Assembly: GCA_021613535.1 (NCBI GenBank)
Contig: CP075495.1
Coordinates: forward strand, 620,001 to 684,000
Direction of reading: 5' to 3'
DNA from: Adineta vaga
Taxonomy: Eukaryota > Animalia > Rotifera
DNA length: 64,000 nt
The notes below the pieces were generated by a model. It saw nothing but the letters and a program-made list of their open reading frames with translations. It was not told the origin of the DNA and made no database searches. A program made the translations under genes and the position numbers. Positions 4,178 to 61,370 of the stretch are shown piece after piece; position 1 is the first letter of the stretch, and each line of letters starts with the position of its first letter.

Positions 4178-4179
4178 CT

Positions 4180-12514: not shown

Positions 12515-12539
12515 CGTTTTCTAGTCGGCATCATCATTC

Positions 12540-13535
12540 TGAAATCGACAAATCAAGAGTACAATGGAAGTGGAAATCAAACACAAATCCATAGTCGACA
12601 GAAGAACCTGATGAGTGGGAAAGCTTTTCGGACATCGAAAATATAATCATTGAAGAGGCGTTGGTGACCAAAAACGTTGTAGTCATACTCGACGATTGCC
12701 ATATTAACTTCAACAGCAACATTAAGATTAGCAATAGTAATATCAATAGACAACGTCCTATGAAAAGAGCCATAGATGGTGAACAAAGCAACCAAAAACT
12801 GAGACAAGGTCGGTTCATGTAAATTCCAATCATACTTAAAGCCTCATTTCACAAACAACATGCACTAACAAGAAATTGAGAATTCACTACAACTGCATCA
12901 GAACAACTCAACATAGCACACAAATTTTTCAAGTAAAGTTTATCAAAAATAGTTCAGTGCGCAGCTGACGGTCTAGTTGTCAAGGGTTAGTCATAAGGGA
13001 TGGAAGCATGCAGCAAATAGGAGAATGTTGTGCGCATCTATACACAATGGAAAGTTTTCTCTATCATAAACTCAATAGTATAATGCGACTAGTGGCTGAC
13101 GAAAAACATTACAGTGTATGGTTACACAAGATTGAAACATTTGAACCGTTTGCACTACTCTTAAACAACCATATAGATGAGTCAAAATCTGACAAATCAA
13201 AAATAGTTTATCGAGACGCGTACTTAACTGATGAAATGATCCAAAACTATTACACTGCCATTCGACGACCAAAAGATCTTAATGAAGACGATGATATGAC
13301 TCCATCATTTCCGGCTTTTACATCATGTTCGCGAAATCGAGCCAAAGCGGAAGAGTACGAAAATGTTCTCTTTATCATCGAACTAATATTCAACAGATCC
13401 GTTGATGTATCTCAATTTTCTGATTATCCTGATGAAGAAGAAGAAATTATCAAACCAGGCGTACTTTTTGTCATCGAAAACATTGAATACGATTCCGAGT
13501 GCGGCAAACATCTCATTGATCTGAGCATTATATAG
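12540..13535 (+). pseudogene. WWE-like domain plus ARTC ADP-ribosyltransferase pseudogene
   Basis: VQWKWKSNTNP*STEEPDEWESFSDIENIIIEEA...RQRPMKR is WWE-like, with stops at 12592 and ~12819. The downstream ORF has LYTMESFLY, VYRD, FTSCSRNR and YPDEEEEII. Confidence 0.75.
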
Positions 13536-17620: not shown

Positions 17621-20600
17621 ATGGCAACTTCTCAAAAGATCATTTCTTTATCTTATTCACGACGTAAAATAGCACTTATCATTGGTATTGGTGATTATAT
17701 TATGGGAAAACAATTACCAAATGCAATAAATGATGCAAAAGATATGTCAAAAGAATTGAAAAAGATTGGATTTATTATTCATAATGATGGTGAAGCAAAA
17801 TTAAATTTAACATATAAAGAAATGAGAAGAACTCTTACAGATTTTGAATGTTCAATTGAGAAAGGAGATATGGTTTTATTTTATTTTGCTGGACATGGAA
17901 CACAATGGGAAGTAAGAAAGATTTATTTATTGAGAATTTTCTTTTCTTTTATTTTAATTTTAATTTAGGATCAAAATTATCTTATTCCAATAAATAATTT
18001 TAAAGAAGAAAATGAAACAAAAGTTGAATTAAGTGGTTCTGATTTAAAAAAATATTCAATTAATGCACAAAATCTTTTAAATAATATTGATGATCGAGAA
18101 CCATTTCTTATTATGTTTTTCTTAGATTGTTGGCGAACATATCATTTACGTCATATGGAATTACAAAGAAATACAAGAGAATATTCAAATAATAATTCAT
18201 TACATGGACTTCAATCAATGCCTATTAAAGTTGGATCATTAATTGCATTTGCTTGTGCACCAGGAACAACAGCAGATGAGGGAAATAATCAAGAAAAAAA
18301 TGGTTTATTTACTAAATATCTTCTTCAACATATTTCAAAACCAAATGAAGATATTCTTGAGATACTTCGAGATGTTACACGTGATGTGATTAATGAATCA
18401 AACAAAAAACAAATTCCACATGTTACTTCTGTTTTGACACATCGAAATATTTATCTCAATGAAATAAAACAAGGTATAAAAATAAATTTCTTTTATTAAT
18501 TTTATTGTTCTGAAAATAAAACAAAATTAAAATCATTTCTTCTTTTAGATTCATTTGAATCATCAATAAAACAATTATCGATTTCAACTATGAATAAATC
18601 AACAATAAAACAAAAGCAAAGTAAATTTATTTTATTTTTAATATTAACTAAAATTATTCTTTCGATATTAAAAGAAAAATAATTTATTTGTATCGAAATC
18701 AAATGTTAAAAGTTAAACAAAGAAATATTTATAAGAATATTAAACAATTTCACTAATCCTTTTTAAATCATAAATTCAATCTTTTGAAATTATTTAATTC
18801 ATATGAACTAATTAATTAGATGTTTTTCTCCTTGATCTTTCTATTAATCACGTTTTTTCGATACAAATAGATAAAAAATAGTTAAGTATCTGTGTATTTC
18901 TTTGTTAATTGTGATTTAGACTGACTGATTTTCAATTTATATTATTGAGATATAATGAATTATTATTTATCTTTTGTTCGTTCTTGATAGTTGAAGGCGA
19001 AGTTAGGAGTAATTAGAAATCGACAAATAATTTAACATTTGTTTGGAAACATTTCGATGAAGAAATAACTTCTTAGATCAACTTCAGTCAAGATTAAACA
19101 GATCTTCTCGATAAACATTGTTATTTATTTATTTTAAAATAGAAATTCAATTTCTAAGATATTTTATTTTGATTTACAAATCAAAAGATTTTTCTTTTCA
19201 AATTAATTTCAATTTAAAACAAATTTCTTTCTTTTACGTTTAAAAATTAAAAAGAAAAGAAAAGAAAAGAAAAGAAAAGAAAAGAAAGATTACTTTATTT
19301 TATAATTCAATCAAAGTTCATTTTCTTCAATTTTATTTTAATTACAAAAATTAAAATTAATCTTCGAAGAAAATAATTCATTAATCAAATAAATTATATT
19401 TATTAATAAATAATTTGATCAAATTATCAATTCAACAAAAAAGTAAATTCGTTTCTTTTCTCTTCGATTCTTTGATAATTATTCGATCAAATCAAATCTT
19501 TTTATTTATTTTAAAAAATAAATCAAAACAAAAACTTTTCTTTATTTATCAATTTAAAATTCATTTTTTTCTCTTTCGTTTTTTCAACAAACAAAATCAA
19601 TTTTACGAATTTATTTCGTTTTTTTAATTAACTTAAATAAAATTCCATTCGAAAAGAAAATATTTATTTTCATCTCGTTATTTGAAATTTCATCAAATTA
19701 TTAATGATTTTATTCAAATGAAACTTTTTTCAAAAGAAACGAAACTCAAAATATAAAAACATCGATCAAAACAAATCGTTTTTCTTTTCTTTTCTTTGTT
19801 TAGAAACGAAATTTCAACAAAATGGAACAATTGTTGCGGGAGGAAATGGAGATGGAAATCAATTAAATCAACTCTATTGTCCTCAAGGAATCTTTGTTGA
19901 TGAAAACAAAAACATTTTCATTGCTGATTGTGACAATCATCGTATTTTTGGGTGGAAATGTGATGAAAAACAAGGACAAATCATTGCAGGTGGAAATGGA
20001 GAAGGAGAGAGAATAGATCAATTGAATTGTCCATCAGATGTGATTGTTGATCAACAAAATCATTCAATCATCATTGCTGATCGAGGGAACAGACGAGTGA
20101 TGCGATGGTCAAGAGATCAAAAACAACAAATTCTCATTCAAAATGTCGATTGTTGGGGTTTAACAATGGATCAACATGGATTTATTTATGTTTCTGATTG
20201 GAAGAAGAATGAAGTGAGAAAATGGAAGTTAGAAAAGATTAATGAAAACAAAGAAGGAACATTAGTGGCAGGTGGAAATGGAAAAGGAAATCAAAGAAAT
20301 CAATTCAACTTTCCTATGTTCATCTTTGTTGATAAAGATCAATCTCTTTATGCTTCAGATGAAAAGAATCATCGTGTGATGAAATGGAGAAAAGATGCGA
20401 AGGAAGGAATTGTTGTGGCTGGAGGAAATGATGAAGGAAACAATCTCAATCAATTGAATGGTCCTCGAGGATTGTTTGTTGATGAATGGAATCAAATCTA
20501 TGTGGCAGATTGGGGGAATAATCGAATAATGCGATGGTGTGAAGGAGATGAAGAAGGGGAGATTGTTGTTGGTGGAAATGGTAAAGGAAGTGAATCAAAT

Positions 20601-20702
20601 CAATTGAATTGTCCTTATGGTTTATCATTTGATTCTGAAGGAAATCTTTATGTTTCAGATTGTGTCAATAATCGAATCGTTCGATTTGATAAAATTCATT
20701 GA
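17621..20702 (+). CDS. Gene B: caspase-like peptidase C14 (catalytic Cys replaced by Trp) + Ser/Lys linker + NHL propeller, 588 aa (exons 17621-17911, 17969-18473, 18549-18620, 19804-20702)
   Basis: Motifs ALIIGIGDY, LFYFAGHG, LDCWR, GSLIAFACAPG and NGLFTKYLL. All junctions are GT-AG and frame-consistent (phases 0,1,1). Confidence 0.85.
19250..19284 (+). repeat. (AAAAG)7 microsatellite in the last intron of gene B
   Basis: Direct reading. Confidence 0.9.
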
Positions 20703-28146: not shown

Positions 28147-28456
28147 TCTTAATTATATTCATCAATGTTGTCATTGTAATTATAAACAATTCCTTTGATT
28201 CGAATAAAAGAAATTTCGATGGATTTTCTAACGTTGCTTTTATTCTTTCTGAGTAATTTATTTGTTGATTTGTTAAAAGATAAATAAATTCCATTTAATC
28301 CTTCGAGTTTGTTTGATTTTATATTACGAATTCTCTTTGCAATCGATGATTTTTCCAACAATGAAATATTTTTTGTTGACTTTGACTCATGTTTGTTTAA
28401 AATACTCAAATGCATCGACAGACATTTCATTCTTTTACCAACTTCAATTCAAACAA

Positions 28457-30710
28457 ATGGCAACGGCTAACAACACAAAACAATGTTTCAAATGTTTGAA
28501 ATATAAAAAAATTATAATTCAGTGTCAAGGTTGTTCAAAGGAATTTTGTCAACAAGATTTCAAAGGACATCAAGAATCATTAAATGAAGAATTACATCTT
28601 ATTATCAATGATTATGATCAATTTAGAGATACGATAAACGATCAAAAACAAAATCCACAAAATCATTCACTAATAAAACAAATTGATCAATGGGAAACAA
28701 ATTCCATTCAAATTATTCAACAAACAGCGGAAAAATGTCGACAAAATGTTATTGAACATTCCAAAACATCTCTTAGAAACATCGAACAAAAGTTAAGCGA
28801 ATTAGGTGAACAAATCAAAGAAATTCAACGAGAAAATGAATTTAATGAAATTGATTTGAATGAATTAAGAGGAAAATTAAATCAAATGACTGAAGAACTA
28901 AATAATCCATCAAATATTTCAATTCAAGAACATTGTCAAGGATTTATTAATGAAATATCAGTTATTTCAAGAAAGAGTAAGTTGAAAGTTTTCAATTCTT
29001 ATTTTATTGAAATGAAAAACTGATTTAAAACTGATGTCTAAAAAAGATCTTTATTTTCTAATGAAGAACAAAAAGACAAATCAAATTAATACAATTTAGT
29101 TTTATGTTCTTCATTCGAATGATTACGAGAAACTTTGATATTTCGTGTTCAAAGGGTAACAATAACTGAAAAATGTTGTCTTTAAATAGATTAATTTAGT
29201 CTTTTCTTCTTTATTTTATTTTATCATATTTACAATCATAAATATTTCATTTTGGATCTTTAGTTCAATTAAACATATGTAAAATAATGATGAATTGAGT
29301 AAGGAGAGAGAGAAAATAAATATGTCAATGTGCATTTATATATTACTAAATCTTTTATAGAACACTAAAATGAACAAAAAAAGATTCGAAAATTATCTAA
29401 AATCTGAGAAAAACGCAAAGATTTTATATTATTATTATTAATTCATTTTTTTATTCGAATCTTCAGAAAAAATAAAAACATTTTTATTGATTTTCAAATT
29501 TCGAATTATTTTTCGTTCATTAAATTATAATAATCAATTGAAAAGATGTTTTTCTTCGTTTTCATAATTTAATTTTCGATGAAATCAAAGATTTCCTCTT
29601 TACTTTTAATTCAAAATCAAACTGAATTTCTAAACGAAAATTAAATTAAAAAAAAAATTTTTGATTTTTATCTCAAACTTCATGAAATTCGAAATGATTT
29701 TATTCAAAGCAAATTTCTTTTTCTTTGTTTTCAATTTTTAGTTGATTGAAAAACGAAAAAATAAACTTTTCATTTTCTTTTTCACAAATCTTTTTTCTTT
29801 TCTTTGTTTAGAAACGAAATTTCAACAAAATGGAACAATTGTTGCGGGAGGAAATGGAGAAGGAAATCAATTAAATCAACTCTATTGTCCTGGAGGAATC
29901 TTTGTTGATGAAAACAAAAACATTTTCATTGCTGATTGTGACAATCATCGTATTGTTGAATGGAAATGTGATGAAAAACAAGGACAAATCATTGCAGGTG
30001 GAAATGGACAAGGAGAGAGAATAGATCAATTGAATTTGCCAACAGATGTGATTGTTGATCAACAAAATCATTCAATCATCATTGCTGATCAAGGGAACAG
30101 ACGAGTGATGCGATGGTCAAGAGATCAAAAACAACAAATTCTCATTCAAAATATTGAATGTTGGGGTTTAACAATGGATCAACATGGATTTATTTATGTT
30201 TCTGACCGACAGAAGAATGAAGTGAGAAAATGGAAGTTAGAAAAGATTAATGAAAACAAAGAAGGAATATTAGTTGCAGGTGGAAATGGAAAAGGAAATC
30301 AAAGAAATCAATTCAATTGTCCTACTCACATCTTTGTTGATAAAGATCAATCTCTTTATGTTTCAGATTGGGATAATCATCGTGTGATGAAATGGAGAAA
30401 AGATGCGAAGGAAGGAATTGTTGTGGCTGGAGGAAATGATGAAGGAAACAATCTCAATCAATTGAATTATCCTGAAGGATTGTTTGTTGATGAATGGAAT
30501 CAAATCTATGTGGCAGATTGTGATAATCATCGAATAATGCGATGGTGTGAAGGAGATGAAGAAGGGGAGATTGTTGTTGGTGGAAATGGTAAAGGAAGTG
30601 AATCAAATCAATTGGATTGTCCTTCTGGTTTATCATTTGATTTAGAAGGAAATCTTTATGTTTCAGATTGGAGAAATCATCGAATTGTTCGATTTGATAA
30701 AATTCATTGA
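28457..30710 (+). CDS. Gene C: B-box-like zinc finger + coiled coil + NHL propeller (RING-less TRIM-NHL-like), 472 aa (exons 28457-28976, 29812-30710)
   Basis: CFKC-x10-CQGC-x4-C-x2-D-x3-H is followed by a heptad-rich Q/E/K region. The phase-1 donor A|GTAAGT is in frame with the NHL acceptor. Confidence 0.87.
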
Positions 30711-35800: not shown

Positions 35801-37869
35801 CTTAAGAAATTCTGTGAATGTTTGTGTTGTTAGCATAAACTAGTAATACTTCACAATATATGATTGTTAATTACAAAGGAGAGTAACGAAACATTTACTG
35901 AATGGATTCGAACAACCTATTACTCGATTAGTAACCGATTGCGTTTACTACTTAAACCACAAGAACACATCATATATGAATATATCATTTAATTTGTTCT
36001 ATTTTCAAAATGATAAGGATTAAAGTTACAGATCTTTTCAGCTAATTCGTAATTATAAACATCCTTTTTAGAAGAGGTTGTTCATTATTACAAATGTCTA
36101 CGAATATCTAAGATACCAATACTTTAGTTCGATAGTTTTGTTTCAATAATGAAAACACAAAACAAATCGAGAAGAAAAACTATTTATTTCCTTTTCTTTC
36201 TAAGTATAAAATCAATTCTTCTTCTCAAATAAATAATTTTACCCTATTCGTTAAAATCTCGATAGTTCAGTATGAAAACATTAATGAAATTCCCTTGTAA
36301 TCGAATATGGAAAATGGTACAAACAAGAACTATAATAGTCAATTGTTTATCTAATTTACATCAAACAAGTAGATTTGTTCGAATAATTTATGTTCGGACA
36401 TCTCCATCAGACATTATTTCATAGATCATTACAAAAACATTAATCAATATAAGAAAATATTCATAAATATGATATTGCATGTGAAGTAAAGAGAATAGAA
36501 ATGATTATTGGGATATATTGAGTTAATCAAATATTTGATCATTGTTATCATCGTGAAACGTGAAGAAGTAACTAAATATTGAACAATAATTGACTGGAAA
36601 TACCATCGAAATAATAATAAAGAAGGAAAGAAAGAAAAGAACTATTGACGTAATTCAAATATTCCGATTCTCCGATCGAGATTATTCATGATGATAAAAA
36701 TCATTGAATTAAATCGAATTCACAAGAATATCCATCATCTATTTATTACTAAAGAAAATAATTAATTAAAAATAAACAACGTTGTCGGTATTTCTTTCAA
36801 ATGAGTTTTATATTGAATGTATCAGAACTATTGTCGATACATTTTAGTAACATTTAATATAAAATTATTTCATGTACATAAAATAAGAATATACATGAAG
36901 AAAATAGAAAAGAATAATGTTTCCATTCGTTTTCAATCAAATTGACTTGATTTATCGTAGAATAATAAATAAATATCGAATATATTTCTCACTAATTATT
37001 ATTCTCATCCAAATTTAAATGTTATCAAATGTTTATATGATCAACGAGACTAATATTGTCATTTCATATTCTATAATCATCAAATCTTTATCAATTTCAA
37101 TTAAATTTTCACAATCATTGATACACAATTCATAGTTAATGTTTGTAGATTATCATAGAAAAATTCTATTATCTAATAAATCACAATTCAAATAATATTT
37201 TCCAAATGTAACTTCTTAAATGTCTTCATACTGAAGAAAACATTGCTTTTCGAGAGAAAATAAGTATTTTCTTTATTTTATCGTACTTCATGAATTTGAA
37301 TTTCATTTCTTTTAACATATTCAAATAAGTTAATGTCTAAATGGAATGAAATAAAGATGAGATGTATAATCATCTATCAATTTGTATAAATTTTAGTTTA
37401 TTAACTAAATAATTCTACGGTTACACAAATTCGATATGTTGTTCAAAAGTTCTACTTTCATCTCTTGGACAACATTAATGACATGTTCTTTGATTTCAGC
37501 ATTATTTCCATAAATTTCAACATATAAATTCATCAATATCTCTTTTGAAATATTGAAAAAAAGAAGGTTTTATAAATTGTAAAAGTAAGTTTATATTTCT
37601 GTTGATTTTTAATTCAAAAACGATACTTTTGTATTCGTTCACATTCGATGTGACTGATATTTCAGAAATCAAATATCATTTTATATTGACACAAGAAATG
37701 ATTTTAATGAAAATACATTCAATATTTTCTTCTGAATTTCATTGTTCGTTTTATGACGAAATTATCCAAAAGGAAAGATGGATTTTAAGGTAAAAGATCA
37801 GAAATTGGTATCTTGACCACTCAAAGATTAATTAATTATTAATTCGAACTATTTTATAGTTATAATATT

Positions 37870-40800
37870 AAAATTTAATTCTTGGGAAAACTTTTCTCGA
37901 TATCTTTAGTTTGATTTTGTTATTTTTCAAATTCAACATATTACAGAACAATCATTCTATTCCGAGATTTTGAACATCGTTAAATCAGTTTCAACTGATT
38001 CTCTTAATTTCCCAGTGGGATTCGATTGTGTTCAAACTGATTGATCTCTTATATCAATACAATAAGTAATGGGGATGAGGAAAGAGAATGTGATTCCATG
38101 GAGGAATTCTGAAACTAATTCCACACTGTTCAACATCACAGAATAGAAAATATTCTCTTTATATCGATTCTTTTCATGAAAATAGATAAAACTTTCTTTG
38201 TTAAAACAATGAAAAATACCTTCACTTCTTTTTCAGTTTCAAATTTCTCCAAAACTTCATAATCATTTTTTTAAACGATTCACAGGTTGTTTCATTTCGT
38301 TGATCGATTATTGAAATATCATCTTGAATATGTTCGACCATTTCATTATTGACAATAAAATCGAATTCATCAAAATTCAAGTATCTTTTCTATCCGATTT
38401 CAATCTTTTTTCTTCGTTTTCATTCTTAAAGTTCGTTGAATTTCAACGAAATTACATCGAATTTTTCAAAATCATCGAAAATCAATTTTATTTTATTTCT
38501 CATTGAAAACACTGTGAAATCACTTTGACAGAAACAAAATTATCGAAAACACAAAAAATAAAAGAAAATCTTTGTTATATCGAACATTTTCATCAAATCA
38601 AAACATTTCTTTCGCCTAATTCAAATTAAATTTAACAAAAATCTTTTCGTTTGAAATGCAAAGTTCATTTCAATGAATTTTATCAAATCGAACAATTCGA
38701 TGATTTAGATAATCTGAAACGTAAAGATTTCCTTCTAAATCAAATGATAAACCATAAGGACAACTCAACTGATTTGATTCACTTCCTTCACCATTTCCAC
38801 CAACAACAATCTCCCCTTCTTCATCTCCTTCACACCATCGCATTATTCGATGATTCCACAAATCTGCCACATAGATTTGATTCCATTCATCAACAAACAA
38901 TCCTTGAGGATGATTCAATTGATTGAGATTGTTTCCTTGACCATTTCCTCCAGCCACAACAATTCCTTCCTTCGCATCTTTTCTCCATTTCATCACACGA
39001 TGATTCGAATAATCTGAAACATAAAGAGATTGATCTTTATCAACAAAGATGAACGAAGGCCAGTTGAGTTGATTTCTTTGATTTCCTTTTCCATTTCCAC
39101 CTGCAACTAATATTCCTTCTTTGTTTTCATTAATCTTTTCTAACTTCCATTTTCTCACTTCATCCTTCTTATAATCAGAAACATAAATAAATCCATGTTG
39201 ATCCATTGTTAAACCCCAACATTCAATATTTTGAATGAGAATTTGTTGTTTTTGATCTCTTGACCATCGCATCACTCGGCTGTTCAATAGATCAGCAATG
39301 ATGATTGAATGATTTTGTTGATCAACAATCACATCTGATGGATAATTCAATTGATCTATTCTCTCTCCTTCTCCATTTCCACCTGCAATGATTTGTCCTT
39401 GTTTTTCATCACATTTCCATTCAACAATACGATCATTCACATAATCAGCGATGAAAATGGTTTTGTTTTCATCAACAAAGATTCCAAAAGGATGATAGAG
39501 TTGATTTAATTGATTTCCTTCTCCATTTCCTCCCGCAACAATTGTTCCATTTTGTTGAAATTTCGTTTCTAAACAAAGAAAAGAAAAAAGATTTATGGAA
39601 AAAGAAAATGAAAAGTTTGTTTTTGTTAAAAAAGATAAATTTCTTTGTCGAATTAAATTTTTTGTTTTAAAATTGATTTTCATTTGATTTATTTGAAAAA
39701 AGAAAAGGAAATTTTCAACGAAATTGTTTTATTAAATAATCGAAGATAAAATAAAGAATTTGTAATTTTTGTTGAAATGATCATTTTTTCTTTTAGTTGT
39801 TTTTCTCATTTAATAAAGAAATTTATTTTCGAAAATATTTTGAAATGAAGATAAAGAAAAGATTTAATTAATCGATAATTTTTCATTTTAAATTGAAGAA
39901 AAAAAGAAGATTTTCTATTGAATTTTTAAATCGAATAAAACATTTTCCACTTCAATTTCTAATTAAAAAATAAAATAAATATTTACCACGTTTTGATTTT
40001 GTTGATGTTTTATTATTAGTTGAAATAGATGAATGTTGTTTAGATGAAACTGAAGAATCTAGAAAGAGGAAAAATTTCAATTTAAAATCTCTTTGATATG
40101 ACTACGATTAGAGTTCGAAAGAAAAAAAGGTCTCCATTTTATGAAGATACTCATTACCGAGTAGTTTTCATGTTTTTTTCTCTTAAATAATAACATTGTA
40201 TACGAGTCAAAACGATGTTTTCCTAAAATAATTCTGAATAATAATATTTAACATTATGCTTTTTTATTAAAATAAATATTTTTTAATTTTTATCAAATTA
40301 AGAATATTGTGTAATTGAAAAAAGTGTCGTTTTCTTTTTTATTTCAGATTAGATTATGATTTAACTCTTAATCGTCTAAAATATTCTTTTTATTGTTTAT
40401 AAATAATAAAAACAACAATGTTAAATATTTTATATTTAATTTATAAATCTCTTTTATAAATTCAATTTTTTTTCTCCTAAAAGATAATTTAACGTACGTT
40501 GATATAATTAGATCTTAGTGTTTACATTGATAGATGTACAAACATCGTTAACAAAATGTAGAGAACATCACAGACAAAGTTCTCGAAACTATTCGATATT
40601 AATAAAGCTTTTTTTAACAGAAAAAGAAATTTTATTGTTTAGAAATGAATGCAAATATCAAATCGTTCTTTTCTTCAACTCTCATATTTCGATCTTGTGG
40701 ATGTATTTAGAACTGAACTTCATCGTCAGGCACGTAAACATTCACGTCCTTAACTTGAGAAAGAAATTGCGAAGAGAAAAAAGATTTCTGTTTCGGACAG

Positions 40801-40990
40801 TCGAGGGTCAAGTGAGTCGAACAACGAACGTTACTTGTCCCTTTTATTCTCATTTTTTAGCGTCAAACATATTTTGTTGAAAAATGATTCTCGAAAGTCA
40901 AACATTGTATTTAATTTGATGTCTCAGCAAGGAGGGAAGTGCGAAGCCAGCACGTATCGGATTTTTCAGGTGTTAAGGTGCTCACACTTC
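37870..40990. repeat. Segmental duplication shared with ~49515-52810 (3' flank, NHL exon, intron, linker exon, most of next intron)
   Basis: Near-identical core ~38115-40610 vs ~49805-52310 apart from the NHL variable codons, with more diverged shoulders on both sides. Confidence 0.9.
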
Positions 40991-41816
40991 CTCTTTGTGT
41001 GCGCGTATGAATAAAATCTAATAAATTAAACTTACTCATTGATTGAATTGATGATGTAGTTTTCTTTTCATTTGAAATTGTTAATTTCTCAATAATTGGT
41101 AAATTATCATCAAAAGGCGAAGCAAGTGTTACATAAGGAGGAGTTTGTTCTTTCAAATGAATAATAAATAAACGTTTTGATGCTTTCCATTTACTAACAA
41201 TTTTAAAAAACGTTCCAGGAAGAAGAAGAATTTCATTTTCATCTTGAAAATAAGAATGAGATTGAATAAATTTTCCATGTAAACATTCAATATTAAAAAT
41301 TGTTCGTTGTTTATCTGTTTGAAGAAATGTTTTGATAACATTCATTGTTTCTGTACATGAACTCATTCCCCACCAAATTTGATCTTCATTTTCATAATGA
41401 TCATTTAAATTTTCTGAAACACCTCGATAAATAATTCCTTTAAATGATGGAAGTTTAAATAAAGCTGTAAAGAATAATTTAAGATAAAGAAACCACGAAA
41501 CTAATTGATTTCGATTTTTTGATCGAAGTTTTTCATTAAGTAATTGAAATAAACTTGGATATGGATGAGGCCATTGCATTGTATAAAGATGAATTGCAGC
41601 TGATTCATCTTGTGTTAAACCATCTTTTGGTTTTCGACAATTCTTTTTTGCAATTTCAATCATTGTATCACAGTCATAAAGTAATGATTTTATTGGTTCA
41701 ATTGCTTCTTTTAATGAAACTAATGGGTATTTTTCATAACCTTTAATTGGTGATAATGCCTGATCTGATTCTTTATCAGCATCTAGAAAGCGTTGTGGAA
41801 TTATTCTTTCAGCCAT
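38670..41816 (-). CDS. Gene D: ARTC-type ADP-ribosyltransferase + 72-nt linker exon + NHL propeller, 583 aa (exons 41816-41036, 40058-39987, 39568-38670)
   Basis: Motifs IYRG, WGMSSCT and QDENEILL. All junctions are phase-1 GT-AG, and the linker exon is nearly identical to that of caspase gene F. Confidence 0.85.
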
Positions 41817-44438
41817 TAAATCAAATTTTATTCAAATCAAAGTTTGTCTTACGAAAAATATGAAGAAATGATTTCGATTTAAATATGATATAAATGAATG
41901 AAAGGAAGAAAGAGAATGAAATGTTTTTCGATGATTTTTTTGTTTATGTAAATAGAATTGTTTGAGAAGATTTTTCTTCATTTTGATTCAACAACGAAAG
42001 TAGAAGTATGAAAAATAAAGAAAACTTTCAAATTGTATTTTTCTTTCTACTTCCTATAGACATTTAAGTTTCTCTCTATTCGATTCAAAAGAAAATTAAC
42101 GAAAACAAAACTATCGTGATTTCTTTGATAATATTTTATTAAAAATTGTCTAAGATGATTTTTCATCACCAGTTCTTTCGAAGTCAACGATTTTATTTCG
42201 TCGTATAATTTTGAAATAAATTTCTTTTCGAACTGATTCTTTCCTCGGTAAAAATTCTTTTCTTCAAGTATAGATGAAGATTCATCACTTGTCGTCAAGT
42301 TTTCTGTTTCTATCGATTGTCGAACGGTTCATTGAAAAAGTTCAATTAAATTTATAGAATAAGATAAAACTCAAACAACTAATGAAAAATACGAAATCAA
42401 CGATTTATACAAATAAAAAAGAAAGAAAAAACGTGAATTTGTATTGATTTTTTGTTGAAGAAATAAATTAAGAAATTCAGTTGAATCTAAAATCATAATT
42501 AATAATTGAATTTGTATCATAAAATTTCATAGAATTTTAATTAAGTATATAAAACATCTTTAAACATATTATTATGTAATAATACAGATTTATCATGTAA
42601 GATTAAATTAAAGAAATATTTAATCAACTATCAATGAATAAACATAAATAAACATGAACACAATGAACTTCACGTTGTTTTCTATAAAGCGTGTGCGAGA
42701 GATGAACGTGCTTCTTATCCTTCACTAAAAGTTACATCTTTTCCATCGCTCATTCTCAAATCATTCGCAGTAAATATTTGTAAATCTGCAAATAATTGAC
42801 AAAATAGAATATTTTCATAAATTGTTCTAGAAAAGTTCTAAGCAATTTGATTTGTATCTTTAGCTAAACACATTTTATCAAGAATCGCTGCTAAACGTGA
42901 AGACTTACATGAACCTGTCGCACGGGTAATTCCAATTAAATCATAGATAATTGAATTGAACTTCAAGTTAACGAAACTTTCTTCATATTAAAACTTCGTA
43001 TAGAATTTCATTTTGTTAATATAAATTCATTGATTCTTTTCGATACAATTCGACTTTCACTTCATTTTTTAATCACATAAGTCAAATTAATCTTAATTGA
43101 ATATCTCAAATAATCAAGAAATAATAAAAGATATTCGCTGTGAGTAAAACTTTATTCATCAACCAACTTTCAACAAATAAAATATCCATATTAATCGCAC
43201 AAATTCGATTCACTTTAAGATTTACTTAATCATTTTCATATGTTTATCTGATTATTTAATTGTATAAAAGAACAAGAAAAAGTCATCAAAATCAAATAAT
43301 GTTGAAGAACAATGATTTCTTCAAACAGTGTTATCCATATTTGATATAAACTATAACATTTAATTCTTCAGATTTCTCCACATTATTCGAAATAAAATTA
43401 ATAATTTGATCTGTTATTGTTTTGATCAATAAATTTGTTCATAATCTTCTGTAAATTATCGAAGAAAGTACAAATTCGTGTTTGTAAACCGAATATACGT
43501 ATCAATATCTTAGATTATTTAAAGAATTTCTTTTAAAAATAATGATTGAATAACTTTTGCATCGAGATGATGAATTAGTCTTTCCAATTTGTTTCAAGAA
43601 GATTTATTAAACGATGATATTCATCTTTTGTTGAAAATTCGAATAAATTATTGTTTATGATCGATTGTTAAAATTAAATTAATCCATGTTGAGAATTTAA
43701 TTTATATTCAATGATACCAAACAGATTCAGTTCAATCTAAGACATTTCTTTTGTTGTTCTTGTTGTTGTTTTCTTCGTCATGTTTGAACAATAAAAATCA
43801 ATCAAAGATCGACGAATTTATTTTAGAATAATTGAATAAAATTTACCTTTGTTTGTTCTTTTACTTGGAGAATCAAAGAGTTTTATAGAATTTATCATAA
43901 TCGAGATTAAATTTTGTACATTTTTTTTCATTCTTTTGGATGATCATGAAAGAAGAAGGTCATTATTTACGACAATTAGTTTTTCTTATTTATTTCAAAT
44001 GTCAGATGAGATAATGCCTTAACTTATTCAGATTTTTAAACAATTTCATTCGATTTTCTGATTACAAATCGAAAATTGATGTCTTTTCTTCAGAATGTAA
44101 AGTTTTTTTCTAAATGATTCGATGGTTTTTCTCAATCATAAAATAAAAGCTTTTTCATTCAAAGGTTTCCAATCAATTTATATTCTTTTGTTTCTTTCAT
44201 TGATTTTCAAGAAGGAAAATACGATTTAGGTGTTGTTAGCAATTTGACACTTTTTCAAAGCTTAGAACAACTTGTCCTCGTGTTCAAGTGTCCACATTTT
44301 TCGCATGATGATTTGATTAGCGAAGAAAGAAAAGAAATCATTTCATTCTATAAAAAAAAGAAGCGAATTCTTATTGAATCTTTTTACAAAAAACAAATAT
44401 ATTTTCTCAATCATTTTTCTACCTAAATTTTGTTTATC

Positions 44439-46713
44439 TTAAAATAAAAACTTTTCTTTTTCTTTTTCGAAATCAAATCGAACGATTCGATCATTTCCAC
44501 TATCTGAAACATAAAGATTTCCTTCTAAATCAAATGATAAACCTTGAGGACAATCCAATTGATTTGATTCACTTTCTTCACCATTTCCACCAACAACAAT
44601 CTCCCCTTCTTCATCTCCTTCACACCATCGCATTATTCGATGATTCCTCCAATCTGCCACATAGATTTGATTCCATTCATCAACAAACAATCCATGAGGA
44701 CAATTCAATTGATTAAGATTGTTTCCTTGACCATTTCCTCCAGCCACAACAATTCCTTCCTTCGCATCTTTTCTCCATTTCATCACACGATGATTCGAAT
44801 AATCTGAAACATAAAGAGATTGATCTTTATCAACAAAGATGAAAGTAGGATAGTCGAGTTGATTTCTTTGATTTCTATTTCCATTTCCACCTGCAACTAA
44901 TATTCCTTCTTTGTTTTCATTAATCTTTTCTAACTTCCATTTTCTCACTTCATTCTTCTCACAATCAGAAACATAAATAAATCCATGTTGATCCATTGTT
45001 AAACGAGAACAATCAATATTTTGAATGAGAATTTGTTGTTTTTGATCTCTTGACCATCGCATCACTCGTCTGTTCCCACGATCAGCAATGATGATTGAAT
45101 GATTTTGTTGATCAACAATCACATCTGTTGGGCCATTCAATTGATCTATTCTCTCTCCTTCTCCATTTCCACCTGCAATGATTTGTCCTTGTTTTTCATC
45201 ACATTTCCATTCAACAATACGATCATTCCCCCAATCAGCAATGAAAATGTTTTTGTTTTCATCAACAAAGATTCCTTCAGGACGATAGAGTTGATTTAAT
45301 TGATTTCCTTTTCCATTTCCTCCCGCAACAATTGTTCCATTTTGTTGAAATTTCGTTTCTAAACAAAGAAAAGAAAAAAGATTTGTGAAAAACAAAATGA
45401 AAAGTTTATTTTTTCGTTTTTCAATCAACTAAAAATTGAAAACGAAGAAAAAGAAATTTGCTTTGAATAAAATCATTTCGAATTTCATGAAGTTTGAGAT
45501 AAAAATCAAAAATTTTCTTTTTAATTTAATTTTCTTTTAGAAATTCAGTTTGATTTTGAATTAAAAGTAAAGAGGAAATCTTTGATTTCATCGAAAATTA
45601 AATTATGAAAAAGAAGAAAAATATCTTTTCAATTGATTATTATAATTTAATGAACGAAAAATAATTCGAAATTTGAAAATCAATAAAAATGTTTTTATTT
45701 TTTCTGAAGATTCGAATAAAAAAATGAATTAATAATAATAATATAAAATCTTTGCGTTTTTCTCAGATTTTAGATAATTTTCGAAACTTTTTTTGTTCAT
45801 TTTAGTGTTCTATAAAAGATTTAGTAATATATAAATGCACATTGACATATTTATTTTCTCTCTCTCCTTACTCAATTCTTCATTATTTTACATATGTTTA
45901 ATTGAACTAAAGATCCAAAATGAAATATTTATGATTGTAAATATGATAAAATAAAATAAAGAAGAAAAGACTAAATTAATCTATTTAAAGACAACATTTT
46001 TCAGTTATTGTTACCCTTTGAACACGAAATATCAAAGTTTCTCGTAATCATTCGAATGAAGAACATAAAACTAAATTGTATTAATTTGATTTGTCTTTTT
46101 GTTCTTCATTAGAAAATAAAGATCTTTTTTAGACATCAGTTTTAAATCAGTTTTTCATTTCAATAAAATAAGAATTGAAAACTTTCAACTTACTCTTTCT
46201 TGAAATAACTGATATTTCATTAATAAATCCTTGACAATGTTCTTGAATTGAAATATTTGATGGATTATTTAGTTCTTCATTCATTTGATTTAATTTTCTT
46301 TTTAAATCCTTCAAATCAATTTCATTAAATTCATTTTCTCGTTGAATTTCTTTGATTTGTTCACCTAATTCGCTTAACTTTTGTTCGATGTCTTTAAAAG
46401 ATGTTTTGGAATGTTCAATAACATTTTGTCGACATTTTCCCGCTGTTTGTTGAATAATTTGAATGGAATTTGTTTCCCATTGATCAATTTGTTTTATTAG
46501 TGAATGATTTTGTGGATTTTGTTTTTGATCGTTTATCGTATCTCTAAATTGATCATAATCATTGATAATAAGATGTAATTCTTCATTTAATGATTCTTGA
46601 TGTCCTTTGAAATCTTGTTGACAAAATTCCTTTGAACAACCTTGACACTGAATTATAATTTTTTTATATTTCAAACATTTGAAACATTGTTTTGTACTAT
46701 TTGCCATAGCCAT
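44439..46713 (-). CDS. Gene E: B-box-like + coiled coil + NHL propeller with alternative C-terminal tail, 479 aa (exons 46713-46194, 45358-44439)
   Basis: Inverted paralog of gene C with the same 835-nt intron. The NHL exon ends RFDFEKEKEKFLF instead of RFDKIH. Confidence 0.87.
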
Positions 46714-49700
46714 TTGTAAGAAAGAGACGTTGTAAAAGTGAAAATGAAAAGATTGATGTTGATGAAGATAAGAATAAAATGTCTCAAAGACAATAATGAT
46801 AAGATATAAAATATGTTGGAAAATAAAGATGGTTGAGTCATATTTTAATATTATTTGATTCTCTTTCTTTTTATCATGAAAACATATTATCTAGTATTGA
46901 AAAATCATATGAAAGAAAAGAATGTATATTCGATCTAGTAGAGTTATTCGATCATTTTATACATATAGATATAGCGATGAGGGACAAACTCTTTAAAAAT
47001 TTCTTTGAATTATAAATATTCAATTACGACGAGGTTTGTGCACAAGTGAAAATTAAATTTTACAATCTTGACCATTTTTACAGAAATAAAAGAAATGTTT
47101 TGTAATTATTGTTTCGAATAATTCGAGTCACATAGTCGAATTAACATTCTCAAGTTTTTGAGTCCAAGTCGAGATTGAGAGTGTATCTTTTATGCCTTAA
47201 TCTTTCCATTCATTGATCGATTTCAATACTCTTCGAAATATTTCAATATGATTTTATCTGAATAAAAATCTTTTTTTTGAACTCTGTTGTATTGAAATCT
47301 TAACATTTGATTGATGAATTTTGTTTCTTTTTTTTAATATTTATTATCATTTTGATTCAAATTTCTAAAATTGAAAATTAATTTATATATCTTTTTCAAG
47401 ATTTTTTAAATTTGTTCAAAAAAAAGAAACATAACATTAGAATATCGATAAATAAATCTCTTAAATTGATTGAAAACAATTAAATATATTAAAAAAGAAA
47501 AAACAAATCTGTTCAATAATTATAATATTTTCTTCTATTAGATAACTTACCGTTCATCATATTCAATCACAAATTGACATAGTTTATTAATGAATCATAA
47601 TTGTATATAACGATATATTGATGATTATCTAATTCTTTACTATAGTCAATTTTCTTTGTAGAATTCTAAAGTATATTACGATATTCTTCAAAAATGAATC
47701 ATTATAATTATTATCGTTTATAAATGGATAAACAGCAAAATAAGAGAAGATATTGATAACATCTTCTCGACATTTGTTTGACAATGAAAACATCAACTAA
47801 TATAACAGTTGTTTTTTTTTAATCATCTCACGAAATATATATAATCAAATGTTTTATTAAATCATAGAATGAGTGTAATGTTTCGAAATAAATGAAGAGC
47901 AGATTCTAACTGACAAACAATTGTTGAAATTTAGTAAATTATAATAATCGAATTATTAAATATCAGTTTTTATGATAATTATGAAGAAAAGTTTAGTATC
48001 AACTTAATAAAATAATTAATATTAATTATATTTATATAAACAAAATCTTTCTCTCGATAAAATAATCGATATTTCAATTTTTATCAATGAATAATTTAAC
48101 TAAACTACTATCTGTTGTGATAAAACTCCTCGCATTGCTTCATCATAAGTATAAAAGATAAAACTTTAGGAAATCTTGTTAAAAATTGTTCATTTCGATA
48201 AATTACTATTGTTATTAATTAACATTGATATGAATTCAAACTATTTTAAAAATAATATTGTTCAAATACTTGAAATAATAGTATTGGAAGAAAAAAAGAA
48301 CACATTGACAATAAGATTCTTGAAAAATGAATTATTGATTCGAATAATCGTATAACATATTCTATTGATCTAAAACTAATCAAAGTTAATTAATTTATTA
48401 ATATTATAACTAATGTAATTGAAATATTATCTAACATTTGAATTTTATTTATTTTCAATGAAAATAAATTTCATTTCTTTTTGTTCATATCGATATCTTT
48501 TAAAATTTAATCTAAATAATAATTATACAATTATTCTTTCATTCAATTATATAAATCATAAAGAATATTAGAAAAAAAAACATTATTTTTCAAAATATTT
48601 ATCACAATTTGATTAAAACTCAATGAAAATATCGATATTGTTAAAACTATTAATAGTTTTTCATATTAAAATATAATTATTTGTTGTAAATTCATTGACA
48701 ATATTTTTAACACTTTGAAATTTAGTTCAATATTTTATTGATTTAGTAAGAAAATGAAATAAGAATGATTTGATTTGAATATATTGATTCAGATTTAATT
48801 ATCAAATGAATATGATAGAATATGTTTAACTATTCTGGATTTTTCTTTCGATTAATCATTTGAAATAAAGTTGATTTGAGATTTTATTTGAATAAAATAT
48901 TTTGATTTTAATTATTAAATAGATAAAATACTTTTCTAATAGAACTTCACAAATGAAATCAAGTTTAGTTTTTAATTTCTTTTTAAATATAAAGTAAATG
49001 ATCTATTTATTAAAGAAAATCTATAATTCTTCTCATTTTATTTGTACATACTATTTCAAATGATTTCAATAACAATTTAATTGATTATAATCTTATAAAA
49101 TATCATGTGTGTAATATCTCTTTGATTTATTGATCAATATTTATATAATTCATTGAATGTTCATTTACGACGATTATAGATTAGATTTCTTTCTATCATT
49201 CAGAAGTATTTGTTGAGTCTGTTCAATATGTATTATAAACATTATCGGTTGATTCGACGATCAGAAAATCAAATATTCATTATTATTATCTCGATATCAT
49301 ATCATTTTATCTAAATCGTCTTGATACAATTCGATTTTTCGGAAAGAAGTTGTCAAACTTATTTCATTGTTGTTGGTATCGATATTAAAATATTTTCCAT
49401 GAAGAATTATTTTCCAAAATGAATTTCAATGATGAACACATCGATCATCAGTAGAATATTTTTGACTGAAATCATATGTAAGTACAATACAAGTTTTACA
49501 TTTACAGTTCATCTTTAATTCTTGAGAAATTTCTCTCGATATCTTTAGTTTGATTTTGTTACTTTTCAAATTCAACATATTACAGAACAATCATTCGATT
49601 CCGAGATGTTGAATATTGTGAAATCAGTTTCAACTAATTATCTCAATGTTTTAAAGAGATTGGTTTGTATTCAAATCGATTGATCTGTCTACACAAAACA

Positions 49701-50361
49701 ATAAGTGATGAGGGTGAAGAAAGATAATGTGATTCCATTAAGGAATTTAGGGAGATAGAATGAAACTATATACCAATATTAAGTGTATTTGGTAATTGGT
49801 TGGAACTAATTCCACACTGTTCAACATCACAGAATAGAAAATATTCTCTTTATATCGATTCTTTTCATGAAAATAGATAAAACTTTCATTGTTATAACAA
49901 TAAAAAACATCTTCACTTCTTTTTTCCGTTTCAAATTTCTCCAAAACTTCATAATCATTTTCTTAAACGATTCACAGGTTGTTTCATTTCGTTGATCGAT
50001 TATTAAAATATTATCTTGAATATGTTCGACCATTTCATTATTGACAATAAAATCGAATTCATCAAAATTCAAGTATCTTTTCTATCCGATTTCAATCTTT
50101 TTTCTTCGTTTTCATTCTTAAAGTTCGTTGAATTTCAACGAAATTACATCGAATTTTTCAAAATCATCGAAAATCAATTTTATTTTATTTCTCATTGAAA
50201 ACACTGTGAAATCACTTTGACAGAAACAAAATTATCGAAAACACAAAAAATAAAAGAAAATCTTTGTTATATCGAACATTTTCATCAAATCAAAACATTT
50301 CTTTCGCCTAATTCAAATTAAATTTAACAAAAATCTTTTCGTTTGAAATGCAAAGTTCATT

Positions 50362-53300
50362 TCAATGAATTTTATCAAATCGAACGATTCGATGATTAAC
50401 ACAATCTGAAACATAAAGATTTCCTTCTAAATCAAATGATAAACCAATAGGAAAATTCAATTGATTTGATTCACTTCCTTCACCATTTCCACCAACAACA
50501 ATCGAACCTTCTCGATCTCCTTCACACCATCGCATTATTCGATGATTCTCCCAATCTGCCACATAGATTTGATTCCATTCATCAACAAACAATCCTTGAG
50601 GATGATTCAATTGATTAAGATTGTTTCCTTGACCATTTCCTCCAGCCACAACAATTCCTTCCTTCGCATCTTTTCTCCATTTCATCACACGATGATTCGA
50701 ATAATCTGAAACATAAAGAGATTGATCTTTATCAACAAAGATGAACGAAGGATAGTTGAGTTGATTTCTTTGATTTCCTTTTCCATTTCCACCTGCAACT
50801 AATATTCCTTCTTTGTTTTTATTAATCTTTTCTAACTTCCATTTTCTCACTTCATCCTTCTTATAATCAGAAACATAAATAAATCCATGTTGATCCATTG
50901 TTAAACCAAAACAATCAATATTTTGAATGAGAATTTGTTGTTTTTGATCTCTTGACCATCGCATCACTCGTTTGTTCCCTCGATCAGCAATGATGATTGA
51001 ATGATTTTGTTGATCAACAATCACATCTGATGGATGATTCAATTGATCTATTCTCTCTCCTCTTCCATTTCCACCTGCAATGATTTGTCCTTGTTTTTCA
51101 TCACATTTCCATTCAACAATACGATGATTCCCAAAATCAGCAATGAAAATGTTTTTGTTTTCATCAATAAAGATTCCAAAAGGACTAGAGAGTTGATTTA
51201 ATTTCTTTCCAACTCCATTTCCTCCCGCAAGAATTGTTCCATTTTGTTGAAATTTCGTTTCTAAACAAAGAAAAGAAAAAAGATTTATGGAAAAAGAAAA
51301 AGAAAAGTTTGTTTTTGTTAAAAAAGATAAATTTCTTTGTCGAATTAAATTTTTTGTTTTAAAATTGATTTTCATTTGATTTATTTGAAAAAAGAAAAGG
51401 AAATTTTCAACGAAATTGTTTTATTAAATAATCGAAGATAAAATAAAGAATGTGTAATTTTTGTTGAAATGATTATTTTTTCTTTTAGTTGTTTTTCTCA
51501 TTTAATAAAGAAATTTATTTTGGAAAATATTTTGAAATGAAGATAAAGAAAAGATTTAATTAATCGATAATTTTTCATTTTAAATTGAAGAAAAAAAGAA
51601 GATTTTCTATTGAATTTTTAAATCGAATAAAACATTTTCCACTTTCAATTTCTAATTAAAAAATAAAATAAATATTTACCTCGTTTTGATTTTGTTGATG
51701 TTTTATTATTAGTTGAAATAGATGAATGTTGTTTAGATGAAACTGAAGAATCTAGAAAGAGGAAAAATTTCAATTTAAAATCTCTTTGATATGACTACGA
51801 TTAGAGTTCGAAAGAAAAAAGGTCTCCATTTTATGAAGATACTCATTACCGAGTAGTTTTCATGTTTTTTTCTCTTAAATAATAACATTGTATACGAGTC
51901 AAAACGATGTTTTCCTAAAATAATTCTGAATAATAATATTTAACATTATGCTTTTTTATTAAAATAAATATTTTTTAATTTTTATCAAATTAAGAATATT
52001 GTGTAATTGAAAAAAGTGTCGTTTTCTTTTTTATTGCAGATTGGATTATGATTTAACTCTTAATCGTCTAAAATATTCTTTATATTGTTTATAAATAATA
52101 AAAACAACAATGTTAAATATTTTATATTTAATTTATAAATCTCTTTTATAAATTCAATTTTTTTTCTCCTAAAAGATAATTTAACGTACGTTGATATAAT
52201 TAGATCTTAGTGTTTACATTGATAGATGTACAAACATTGTTAACAAAATGTAGAGAACATCACAGACAAAGTTCTCGAAACTATTCGATATTAATAAACT
52301 TTTTTTTTTAACAGAAAAATAAATTTTATCGTTTAAAAATGAATTCGAATATCAAATCGTTCTTTTCTTCAACTCTCATATTTCGATCTTGTGGGTGTAT
52401 TTAGAACTGAACTTCATCGTCAAGCACGTAAGCATTTACGTTTTTAACTTCGGAGATAAATTGCGAAGAGAAAAAATATTTCTGTTTCGGACAGTCGAGG
52501 GTCAAGTGAGTCGAACAACGAACGTTACTTGTCCCTTTTATTATCATTTTTTTAGGGTGAAACATATTTTGTTGAAAAATGATTGTCGAAAGTATAACAT
52601 TGTATTTAATTTGATGTCTGAGCAAGGAGGAGAATGCAAAGCAGGTGCCGCCAGCACCTATCAACATATACAGGTACTGAGTTACTTGTATTCTCTCCCC
52701 CGGTAGGTGACGAAGCGCTGGTAGTATCAGATGCGCATTTTCCATTTAGCTCGTACTCGCTCAGTATCTATCGGGGTTTTCAGGAGCTTAGGTACATACA
52801 CTTTCACCCATGTGTCAGCGGGCGGATGTGGGTATATGTGTAGATGTGAGTGAAGAAGATATATCAACACACCCACTCACATCCCCACCCTTAATACGTT
52901 ACTTATGAAAAATTCTAAAATTCTTTACCTTTTTTCCCATTGAATAAACAAATATGATCATCTGTTAAAATAGAAATAACATGTGGAATTTGGTCTTTAT
53001 TTGTATTTGTCATCACATCTTTTCGAACACGACGTAAAAGTATATCAATATCTTCATTTGGTGTTGGAAGATGTTTAAGAAGATATTTTGTAAATAAACC
53101 ATTATTTTCTCTATTATTTCCATCCTCTGCTGTGGTTCCTGGTCCACAGGCAAATGCAATCAATGAACCCGCATTTTTTGTAGACATTGAACTTAATCCT
53201 CTGGTATGATTAGTTGAATTACCTCTTGTAGATTTTTGTAAATCAGCATTACGTAAATGATAAGTTCGACAACAATCTAAGAAAAACATGATTAAATATG

Positions 53301-53770
53301 GATTTTGATCATCAATTTTATTAAGAAAATGTTGTGCATTGATTGCGTAATTTCTAAGTTCAGAACCAGTTAATCCTTTTTTTCCATCGTATTCTTCTTT
53401 AAAATCATCCGATGGAATTAAATAATTTTGATCCTAAAAATAAAGAATAAGAAAATAAAAAATTGTTCAATATTAATCTTACTTCCCATTGTGTACCATG
53501 TCCTGCAAAATAAAATAAAACCATATCATCTTTTCTTAATGAACGTATAAAACTATTAACTGTCGATTCAAATTCATCACAAGTTAAATTTAATTTTGCT
53601 TCACCACCATGAATAATAAATCCCATTGATTTTAACATTTTCGACATATCATTTGCATCGTTAACAGCGTTTGCTAAAGAATTATTAATTTCATATTTAC
53701 TAATACCAATAACAAGTGCTATTTTACGATGAATATTAACTGAAGAAGAAAGATTTTCTATGGAAGCCAT
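50362..53770 (-). CDS. Gene F: caspase-like peptidase C14 (intact His/Cys dyad) + linker + NHL propeller, 587 aa (exons 53770-53483, 53433-52929, 51751-51680, 51260-50362)
   Basis: LFYFAGHG and LDCCR are intact. Intron positions and phases match gene B. Confidence 0.87.
52820..52891. repeat. Degenerate telomere-like hairpin element in the intron of gene F
   Basis: G/T-rich arm (ggatgtgggt...gtgagtg), core gaagaagatata, then C/A-rich arm (cacacccactcacatccccaccct). Confidence 0.6.
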
Positions 53771-60523: not shown

Positions 60524-60630
60524 ATCTTGAGGGTGCGTGTGGGTAATACACTTCTCTTCATCTACACCCACACCCACACCCACACCCACACCCACACCCA
60601 CACCCACACCCACACCCACACCCACACCCT
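60524..60630. repeat. Hairpin element whose right arm is a perfect (ACACCC)11 array, i.e. a (TGTGGG)n telomere-type repeat on the - strand
   Basis: 60564-60629 is 11 perfect hexamers. The left arm ATCTTGAGGGTG matches the start of the 61313 element. Confidence 0.9.
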
Positions 60631-61312: not shown

Positions 61313-61370
61313 ATCTTGAGGGTGTGGGTGTGGTTATATATTACCTAGTCCTCACACACACCCTCAAGAT
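61313..61370. repeat. Short hairpin element with 14-bp perfect inverted termini
   Basis: ATCTTGAGGGTGTG ... CACACCCTCAAGAT. Confidence 0.85.

Follow-up and report, generated by a model that had tools for sequence, protein, structure and literature searches.

Genes D and F, which lie in the same orientation 11.7 kb apart in a 64,000-nucleotide (nt) stretch of the Adineta vaga genome (C2:620001-684000, hereafter the window), are expressed members of a large effector-NHL family of this rotifer. In this family, an N-terminal arginine-type ADP-ribosyltransferase (ART), caspase-like protease or B-box/coiled-coil head leads through a phase-1 splice into a six-bladed NHL propeller with hypervariable loops. 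D has an ART head and F a caspase-like head, and behind these heads both genes carry the same cassette. It begins within an intron, of which most is shared, and continues through an S/T/K-rich linker exon (72 nt), a second intron (418 nt) and the NHL exon into ~0.8 kb of 3′ flank. We are highly confident that this arrangement arose by an exon shuffle that was followed by gene conversion. The parts of the two genes, with exon boundaries set from the sequence and from RNA joints, are as follows.

41816-38670, minus strand: gene D, ART head
41036-41816, minus strand: D exon 1, ART head, 260 codons plus 1 base, phase-1 end (open reading frame (ORF); Pfam PF01129; RNA joint 40058 to 41036)
40059-41035, minus strand: D intron 1, 977 nt; 40059-40947 common with F, 40948-41035 specific to D and a further copy, G, except for a weak match at 40955-40989
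39987-40058, minus strand: D linker exon, 72 nt, phase 1 to phase 1
39569-39986, minus strand: D intron 2, 418 nt, 99.0% identical to F (RNA joint 39568 to 39987)
38670-39568, minus strand: D NHL propeller exon, 899 nt including the stop codon; 94.8% identical to F and 93-96% to genes A, B, C and E
37874-38669, minus strand: D 3′ flank common with F (38236-38669, 99.3%; 38110-38235, 94%; 37874-38109, 83%)
53770-50362, minus strand: gene F, caspase-like head
53483-53770, minus strand: F caspase-like exon 1, with GHG histidine
52929-53433, minus strand: F caspase-like exon 2, with DCC cysteine, phase-1 end (an RNA contig joins its end to the linker)
52643-52928, minus strand: F-specific intron start, made up of 26 nt homologous to gene H (52903-52928), a telomere-repeat hairpin (52824-52890), the weak D match (52769-52803) and a 126-nt insertion (52643-52768)
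51752-52642, minus strand: part of F intron 1 common with D
51680-51751, minus strand: F linker exon, 71/72 identical to D
50362-51260, minus strand: F NHL propeller exon
49514-50361, minus strand: F 3′ flank common with D, with a 53-nt F-specific insertion (49748-49800)

BLASTN aligns D 38110-40947 with F 49801-52642 at 96.5% identity over 2844 columns with 7 gap openings, a match also returned by a repeat search, and continues at 84% between D 37874-38108 and F 49514-49747. Within this tract, the last introns are identical at 414 of 418 positions, and the upstream intron is 98.2% identical on its linker-proximal side (40059-40660) and 92.3% identical further out (40661-40947); 47 of 899 positions differ in the NHL exon. 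A first-pass annotation of the window had described near-identity from the 3′ flank into the next intron; this description stands, except that the shared part of that intron measures 889 nt (40059-40947) rather than ~550 nt. Similarity of either gene to the intervening gene E is confined to the NHL exon (~94%). The D/F homology ends inside the intron behind each head, and a weak 35-nt match between D 40989-40955 and F 52803-52769 (26/35, with 0 of 500 shuffles as good) indicates that it reaches to within ~45 nt of the ART donor site.

As the annotation had proposed, the tract leads into an ART exon in D and into caspase exons in F. D exon 1 matches Pfam PF01129 at 38.5 bits (cut-off 22.3, E 1.1e-9), and its YRG and E-N-E segments align with the matching stretches of the arginine-ARTs Vis (4xzj) and Tre1 (6dre), with SSC at the S-T-S position, in PDB alignments of weak significance (E 0.012-0.02). 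By its motif content (R, S-x-S and E-x-E), the D head is an arginine-type ART of the R-S-EXE clade, with predicted NAD-dependent ADP-ribosylation activity. The two caspase-like exons of F match Peptidase_C14 at 63.9 bits (exon 1, profile positions 1-84, E 2e-17) and 52.6 bits (exon 2, positions 121-231, E 7e-14) against a cut-off of 21.4. A putative His/Cys dyad, GHG in exon 1 and DCC in exon 2, is read from the translations; a PDB sequence search with exon 2 returned no match. The NHL exon (Pfam NHL, E 2.8e-26) contains five in-register 87-nt repeat copies per gene, and its translations show six GGNG...D..N.R units, from which six blades are predicted. Phase 1 is found at every head-linker-NHL junction, by sequence and RNA joints, and any head can therefore read into any cassette.

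RNA evidence comes from contigs of public sequencing runs of the same organism aligned to the D region (37500-42300), with F seen through cross-mapping contigs. Two runs, X9 and X15, cover exons only and thus behave as RNA. Contigs from both, which represent two studies, join 40058 to 41036, skipping 977 nt with GT..AG on the gene strand, and so splice the ART exon to the linker; in X9, this contig continues to 41242 with a single mismatch and fits D rather than G. Another RNA contig joins 39568 to 39987, from linker to NHL exon, so that the D mRNA includes the linker. An X9 contig with a loose end at 40060 reads as the end of F caspase exon 2, which shows that F also splices into the linker. 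The marks of exon shuffling, namely a breakpoint within an intron, phase-compatible junctions and chimeric mRNA, are thus all present. One further RNA joint, 39568 to 41376, has non-canonical ends and a 21-nt side, and we treat it as a paralog or assembly oddity. Separately, an X15 contig with a loose end at 39570 runs from a caspase-type exon end straight into NHL sequence without a linker, one base off both F and H; it could reflect linker skipping, an allele or an unassembled paralog.

Could a chimeric or collapsed join of paralogs during assembly have made the shared cassette? The region is repetitive, and the public DNA contigs (Logan) are short, with none listed that bridges 40947. Nevertheless, 18 noncoding and 47 exonic differences in the tract's core identify D and F as distinct copies, RNA contigs splice both the ART and the caspase exon to the linker, and DNA contigs from two studies cover 30 of 30 bins, none of the loose ends listed for them being at the breakpoint. 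Moreover, a D-type junction is present in copy G on another chromosome. An artefact of this kind is therefore extremely improbable, and the D junction is upheld both by RNA splicing and by a second genomic copy.

Searching the genome (a six-contig, 100.8-Mb assembly, as in all genome-wide searches here) with the shared intron yielded that one further copy.

C3:3622125-3625788 (L013:6128-9788): copy G, ART-linker-NHL

Collinearity of G with D runs from the E-D spacer into the ART exon (3′ part only) and on through the long intron, linker and NHL exon to ~1.6 kb past the stop codon. In G, ~720 nt are missing, among them the first ~140 codons of the ART head, and the segment spanning the exon end and intron start is duplicated in tandem. 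An RNA contig in which the private linker ending of G is spliced to an NHL exon shows that G is transcribed. The surrounding region, C3:3600-3627 kb, keeps the F-E-D gene order in the form of H (a caspase-NHL gene), an extra ~12 kb with unrelated ORFs and an inverted B-box-NHL gene, a B-box-NHL gene and G; the H head is the best match of the F head (82%). If contig numbers follow the chromosome numbers of the genome paper, C2 and C3 are probably not homoeologues, in which case the two clusters would be related by segmental duplication. Subtelomeric segmental duplications of this kind are reported in that paper (Simion et al. 2021, PMC8494291).

In comparisons of G with D and of G with F, identity is ~81-82% in the introns, 96-97% in the linker exon, 91% in the NHL exon and 94% in the 3′ flank, and the F-D homology is nested inside the D-G collinearity at both ends. 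Because so diverged a copy has the same ART exon, intron, linker and NHL exon, the fusion of ART and cassette is old and long predates the near-identity of D and F. The first-pass annotation had portrayed D and F as an effector swap caught in the act; this portrayal is not supported, as the near-identity is a later gene-conversion tract laid over an ART-intron-linker-NHL gene that already existed. Three segments of the tract set out this history.

40660-38236, core noncoding sequence: D-F 98.8% (18/1453 differ)
40947-40661, 5′ shoulder: D-F 92.3%, D-G 94.1%, F-G 90.9%
38109-37874, 3′ shoulder: D-F 83.4%, D-G 93.2%, F-G 84.6%

In the 3′ shoulder, F differs from D and G at 39 and 36 positions, respectively, and D differs from G at 16. 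F is thus the outgroup to D and G in the shoulders, whereas D and F are sisters in the core, a switch of topology that argues for an old shared origin overwritten by recent conversion. On this comparison, the core is a recent gene-conversion tract of ~2.4 kb over an older common origin. A second patch, shared by D and G (41200-40898; L013:6740-7040), runs for ~300 nt across the end of the ART exon, its donor site and the breakpoint between D and F; it is 98-100% identical between flanks of 68-78% and 88-95%, and points to recent gene conversion between chromosomes. Together, the D/F tract and the D/G patch make D a mosaic in which identity dates the last conversion and not the fusion. The divergences form a self-consistent order, from the F/H heads (18%) through F versus D/G in the shoulders (8-16%), the D/G flanks (5-8%) and the D/F core (1.2%) to the D/G patch (~0%). 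Inside the tract, the D-G and F-G distances are equal, with D-G at ~81-82% in the introns and 94% in the 3′ flank versus 93-94% in the shoulders, a comparison that does not polarise the recent conversion.

Where the cassette came from is a separate question, for which the remaining genes of the window are needed.

9161-11221, plus strand: gene A, ART head
17621-20702, plus strand: gene B, caspase-like head
18549-18620, plus strand: gene B linker exon, homologue of the D/F linker (50/72 nt, equal length and phases; in public annotation I4U23_005852)
28453-30710, plus strand: gene C, B-box/coiled-coil head
46713-44439, minus strand: gene E, B-box/coiled-coil head

All six genes, A-F, end in a near-identical NHL propeller exon, 93-96% identical among them despite diverged heads. 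Heads of one type are old paralogs, with B and F at 76% DNA identity and no BLASTN alignment between the ART exons of A and D. Homology of the D/F linker to exon 3 of B, asserted by the annotation, is confirmed by a gapless alignment of 50 of 72 nt, with the donor-side intron start also in common. Equally, the linker is absent from ART gene A, as had been noted: nhmmer finds none, and an annotated A-like protein (P0004) joins ART straight to NHL. A genome-wide search with a gapped pattern that included the splice sites and allowed up to three mismatches returned exactly five linker exons, those of B, D, F, G and a B-type caspase gene at C1:15650459, and the reversed pattern, used as a control, returned none. 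Among 360 retrieved proteins, a scan for the linker motif found the B protein only.

Several observations favour an ART exon that acquired a caspase-type linker and NHL module. Of the 14 nearest ART heads to that of D, three run into NHL with no intervening intron and nine have an NHL frame close downstream; NHL was not found within the 1.5 kb examined in the other two, and a separate linker exon is present in none of the 14. The nearest relative in another assembly (P0211, locus L077, 67% amino-acid identity) has an intron of only ~60 nt, so that ART-NHL relatives do not ancestrally carry the linker exon, a finding that would otherwise have counted against the annotation. A B-like linker occurs in the A. 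ricciae caspase-NHL protein P0136, although other A. ricciae caspase-NHL proteins lack it. Finally, the D ART exon ends in an S/T-rich tail of its own, which means that D carries such a segment twice. We propose that the cassette is of caspase-gene type and that an ART exon with its own S/T-rich tail would have been joined to it by illegitimate break-and-join, within ~45-90 nt of the donor site. This step, which is old, would have given rise to the ancestor of D and the chromosome-3 copy G. Later, non-reciprocal gene conversion acted between D and F, its last tract running from ~40660 to 38236 and leaving 1.2% noncoding divergence, and D and G exchanged the ~300-nt patch that is now essentially identical. 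Of the capture of a caspase gene's linker and NHL module by an ART exon, as the annotation had inferred it, the swap, its intronic breakpoint and its phase compatibility are real; transfer from caspase to ART with the F lineage as donor we regard as evenly poised, and the full explanation, direction included, as slightly favoured.

A number of points weigh against this direction. The ART tail resembles the linker only weakly (nhmmer E 0.003-0.016). Homology between F and H stops 26 nt into the intron, and H sits in the C3 cluster with the same order of caspase, B-box and ART genes; neither the H intron nor the H 3′ flank occurs elsewhere in the genome, what may be a linker remnant in H is B-like and not D/F-like, and no caspase gene except F has the D/F intron. 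In addition, the stretch of ~100 nt that separates H-like from D-like sequence in F consists almost entirely of the telomere-repeat hairpin and is followed by the 126-nt insertion; such scars would be expected in a recipient and fit F in that role. Repeated conversion also makes any ordering based on divergence uncertain.

These points would be accounted for if the recent direction were reversed, such that the D/G ART lineage owned the cassette, obtained earlier from a caspase-type gene, and F lost an H/B-like cassette and took that of D by break repair, sealed with a telomere-repeat hairpin and later homogenized by conversion. H lacks the cassette of F and has one unique in the genome; the filler lies exactly at the F junction and has no counterpart in D, and the F tract is nested within the longer D-G collinearity on both sides. 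However, this scheme requires two transfers and an unknown first donor, the hairpin, present at seven or more further loci, could have inserted independently of any transfer, and nesting is equally expected if G is a copy of D. Moreover, the 3′ shoulder places F outside D and G, which implies that F had the cassette no later than the D/G split. The order in which F/H divergence exceeds that of F from D/G, then D/G, then the D/F core fits capture from the F lineage and also an early transfer from the D/G ancestor into F. We consider the reversed direction a serious contender, though not a probable one, and retain capture of a caspase-type cassette by an ART exon as our working explanation. The H intron region itself (C3:3601858-3602010; L069:5858-6010) is open in frame into NHL and, after an AG, resembles the start of the B linker (DSSIKYN versus ESSIKQL); it may be a decayed or exonised linker.

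Differential exon loss offers another route, in which an ancestor with caspase, ART, linker and NHL parts was duplicated and then lost its caspase exons in D and its ART exon in F. Proteins that fuse caspase and ART exist in Adineta steineri (P0121, P0122). Nonetheless, tblastn detected neither a caspase relic in D nor an ART relic in F, whether in the intron or further upstream (all E > 0.3), which leaves little support for such losses; the membership of the D ART in a plain ART-NHL clade also speaks against them, and we judge this route very improbable.

The NHL exon has diverged differently from the rest of the cassette. In the D/F core, 47 of 899 NHL positions differ versus 18 of 1453 noncoding positions (odds ratio 4.4, p 2e-8). 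Among A-G, whole-exon dN/dS of the NHL exon is 1.1-2.0 in 19 of 21 pairs (0.91-0.95 for B-C and C-G), and the variable residues recur at the same few positions per blade, adjoining the LNQL..P.G and D..N.R motifs; synonymous divergence is raised too. At 30 of the 47 D/F differences, both alleles occur in other paralogs (nine other copies compared); the 17 private differences amount to 1.9%, near the 1.2% of the flanks, and the NHL exons of D and F are each closer to that of A than to each other. The excess is best explained by patches from other NHL copies kept under diversifying selection, rather than by new mutation alone. Patch conversion of this kind, with at least 27 NHL copies in the genome as potential donors, would together with selection have left D and F different at the presumed recognition surface. 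From domain content, the propeller would be the recognition part, with its variable loops setting specificity, and the head the output; D and F, which differ at about 30 propeller residues, would on that basis no longer have a common specificity.

Other features of the family and the window deserve mention. The closest non-rotifer relatives of the caspase-like head are bacterial or metagenomic proteins at 31-40% identity (for example Desulfonema and Thioploca, among P0153-P0210), which hints at a bacterial-type C14 peptidase, possibly acquired horizontally. Other bdelloids pair the same caspase-like head with ART, protein kinase, Ig or NACHT domains (P0121, P0122, P0137, P0146, P0159), so that combinations of head and partner extend well past NHL. 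Inverted telomere-type repeat hairpins of the form (GGGTGT)n-loop-(ACACCC)n lie at 52824-52890 (minus strand), 12458-12516, 61317-61366 and 60561-60626, the last with a ten-unit (TGTGGG) array. The hairpin in the F intron has a conserved 24-nt core and occurs at seven or more loci genome-wide; across the window, telomere-repeat matches number 21 versus 0.4 expected. The shared intron also contains a ~140-nt element (40697-40838 and 52394-52532) that recurs at 12 or more other loci with 76-95% identity. When neighbouring family genes were checked for this repeat and the hairpin element, caspase-like exons lay near one locus (L017) only, with no consistent association. Scans of 37-54.5 kb against Rfam (E ≤ 1) and for tRNAs gave no match, and the GC-richer segment of the shared intron is thus not a known RNA. 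Elsewhere in the window, an ART-domain ORF (PF01129, E 6e-7) stands alone between A and B, at 13008-13535 on the plus strand. Near the window start, ORFs at 1112-1918 (minus), 2583-3791 (plus) and 4163-4504 (plus) have a common conserved C-terminal domain, and one has hydrophobic N-terminal stretches; ORF 1112-1918, the only one of these scanned, has no Pfam match.

Several known systems resemble D and F in part. Exon shuffling of symmetric 1-1 modules is well established in metazoan genes and follows Patthy's phase-compatibility rule. Here too, modules are joined in introns and phase-1 junctions keep the frame for any head, but these are cytosolic effector and sensor parts within one lineage-specific family, and interlocus gene conversion continues. 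Primate TRIM5-CypA (TRIMCyp), which arose by cDNA retrotransposition, likewise created a new pairing of effector and recognition domain from DNA joined at an intron and then spliced. By contrast, the D/F cassette keeps its introns, which argues that it was joined at the DNA level. Genes C and E recall TRIM-NHL proteins: their start is Cys/His-rich and B-box-like, and a coiled coil and a six-bladed NHL propeller follow. However, they have no RING; Pfam gave weak coiled-coil-type matches to the E head and neither RING nor B-box at E < 0.01. D and F, with enzymes as heads, lack the RING and B-box upstream of a coiled coil and NHL that define TRIM-NHL proteins.

Fungal NLR-like/STAND proteins combine interchangeable N-terminal effectors with hypervariable WD, ANK or TPR repeats that undergo concerted evolution, with diversifying selection at a few positions per repeat. 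By analogy, this repertoire is the closest conceptual parallel known to us, as unrelated effector heads sit on highly similar repeat domains in both. Unlike the fungal proteins, D and F contain no NACHT or NB-ARC that we could find, the repeat domain is an NHL propeller, the heads are of ART, caspase-like or B-box type, and the organism is an animal. Similarities also extend to subtelomeric conversion families (var, VSG and yeast FLO), in the tracts of near-identity bounded by older divergence, the mosaic exons assembled from variants that paralogs have in common, and the subtelomere-like setting with its interstitial telomeric repeats; D and F, however, belong to a germline repertoire in a putatively asexual animal, and no expression-site switching is implied. 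In literature searches, rotifer ART-NHL and caspase-NHL genes were nowhere described, and the only mention was of NHL among expanded A. vaga families with a possible defence role (Arkhipova et al. 2013, PMC3846280).

As mechanisms, both intronic exon shuffling and interlocus gene conversion are well known; the contribution of this locus is a dated, expressed swap with its conversion history. The locus shows, at base-pair resolution and with RNA support, how a recognition domain comes to be coupled anew to unrelated effector enzymes in an animal, after which gene conversion acts over 11.7 kb and between chromosomes while the recognition exon diversifies through paralog variants. A practical lesson is that near-identity of paralogs dates their last conversion, not their fusion. 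As a speculation that we think unlikely to hold in full, the linker and NHL exon might serve as a recognition unit that can be swapped between genes, within an immune-like repertoire that this asexual animal diversifies in its germline. Break repair would couple the unit to new toxin, protease or scaffold heads and leave scars of telomere repeats, and the propeller would be continually re-patterned by patch conversion among paralogs, with selection retaining the changes at loop codons. If so, one target specificity could be coupled to different killing or signalling outputs. More broadly, should the family be a defence repertoire, which its architecture suggests, bdelloid rotifers would be a tractable system in which to follow innate receptors evolving combinatorially in the absence of sex.

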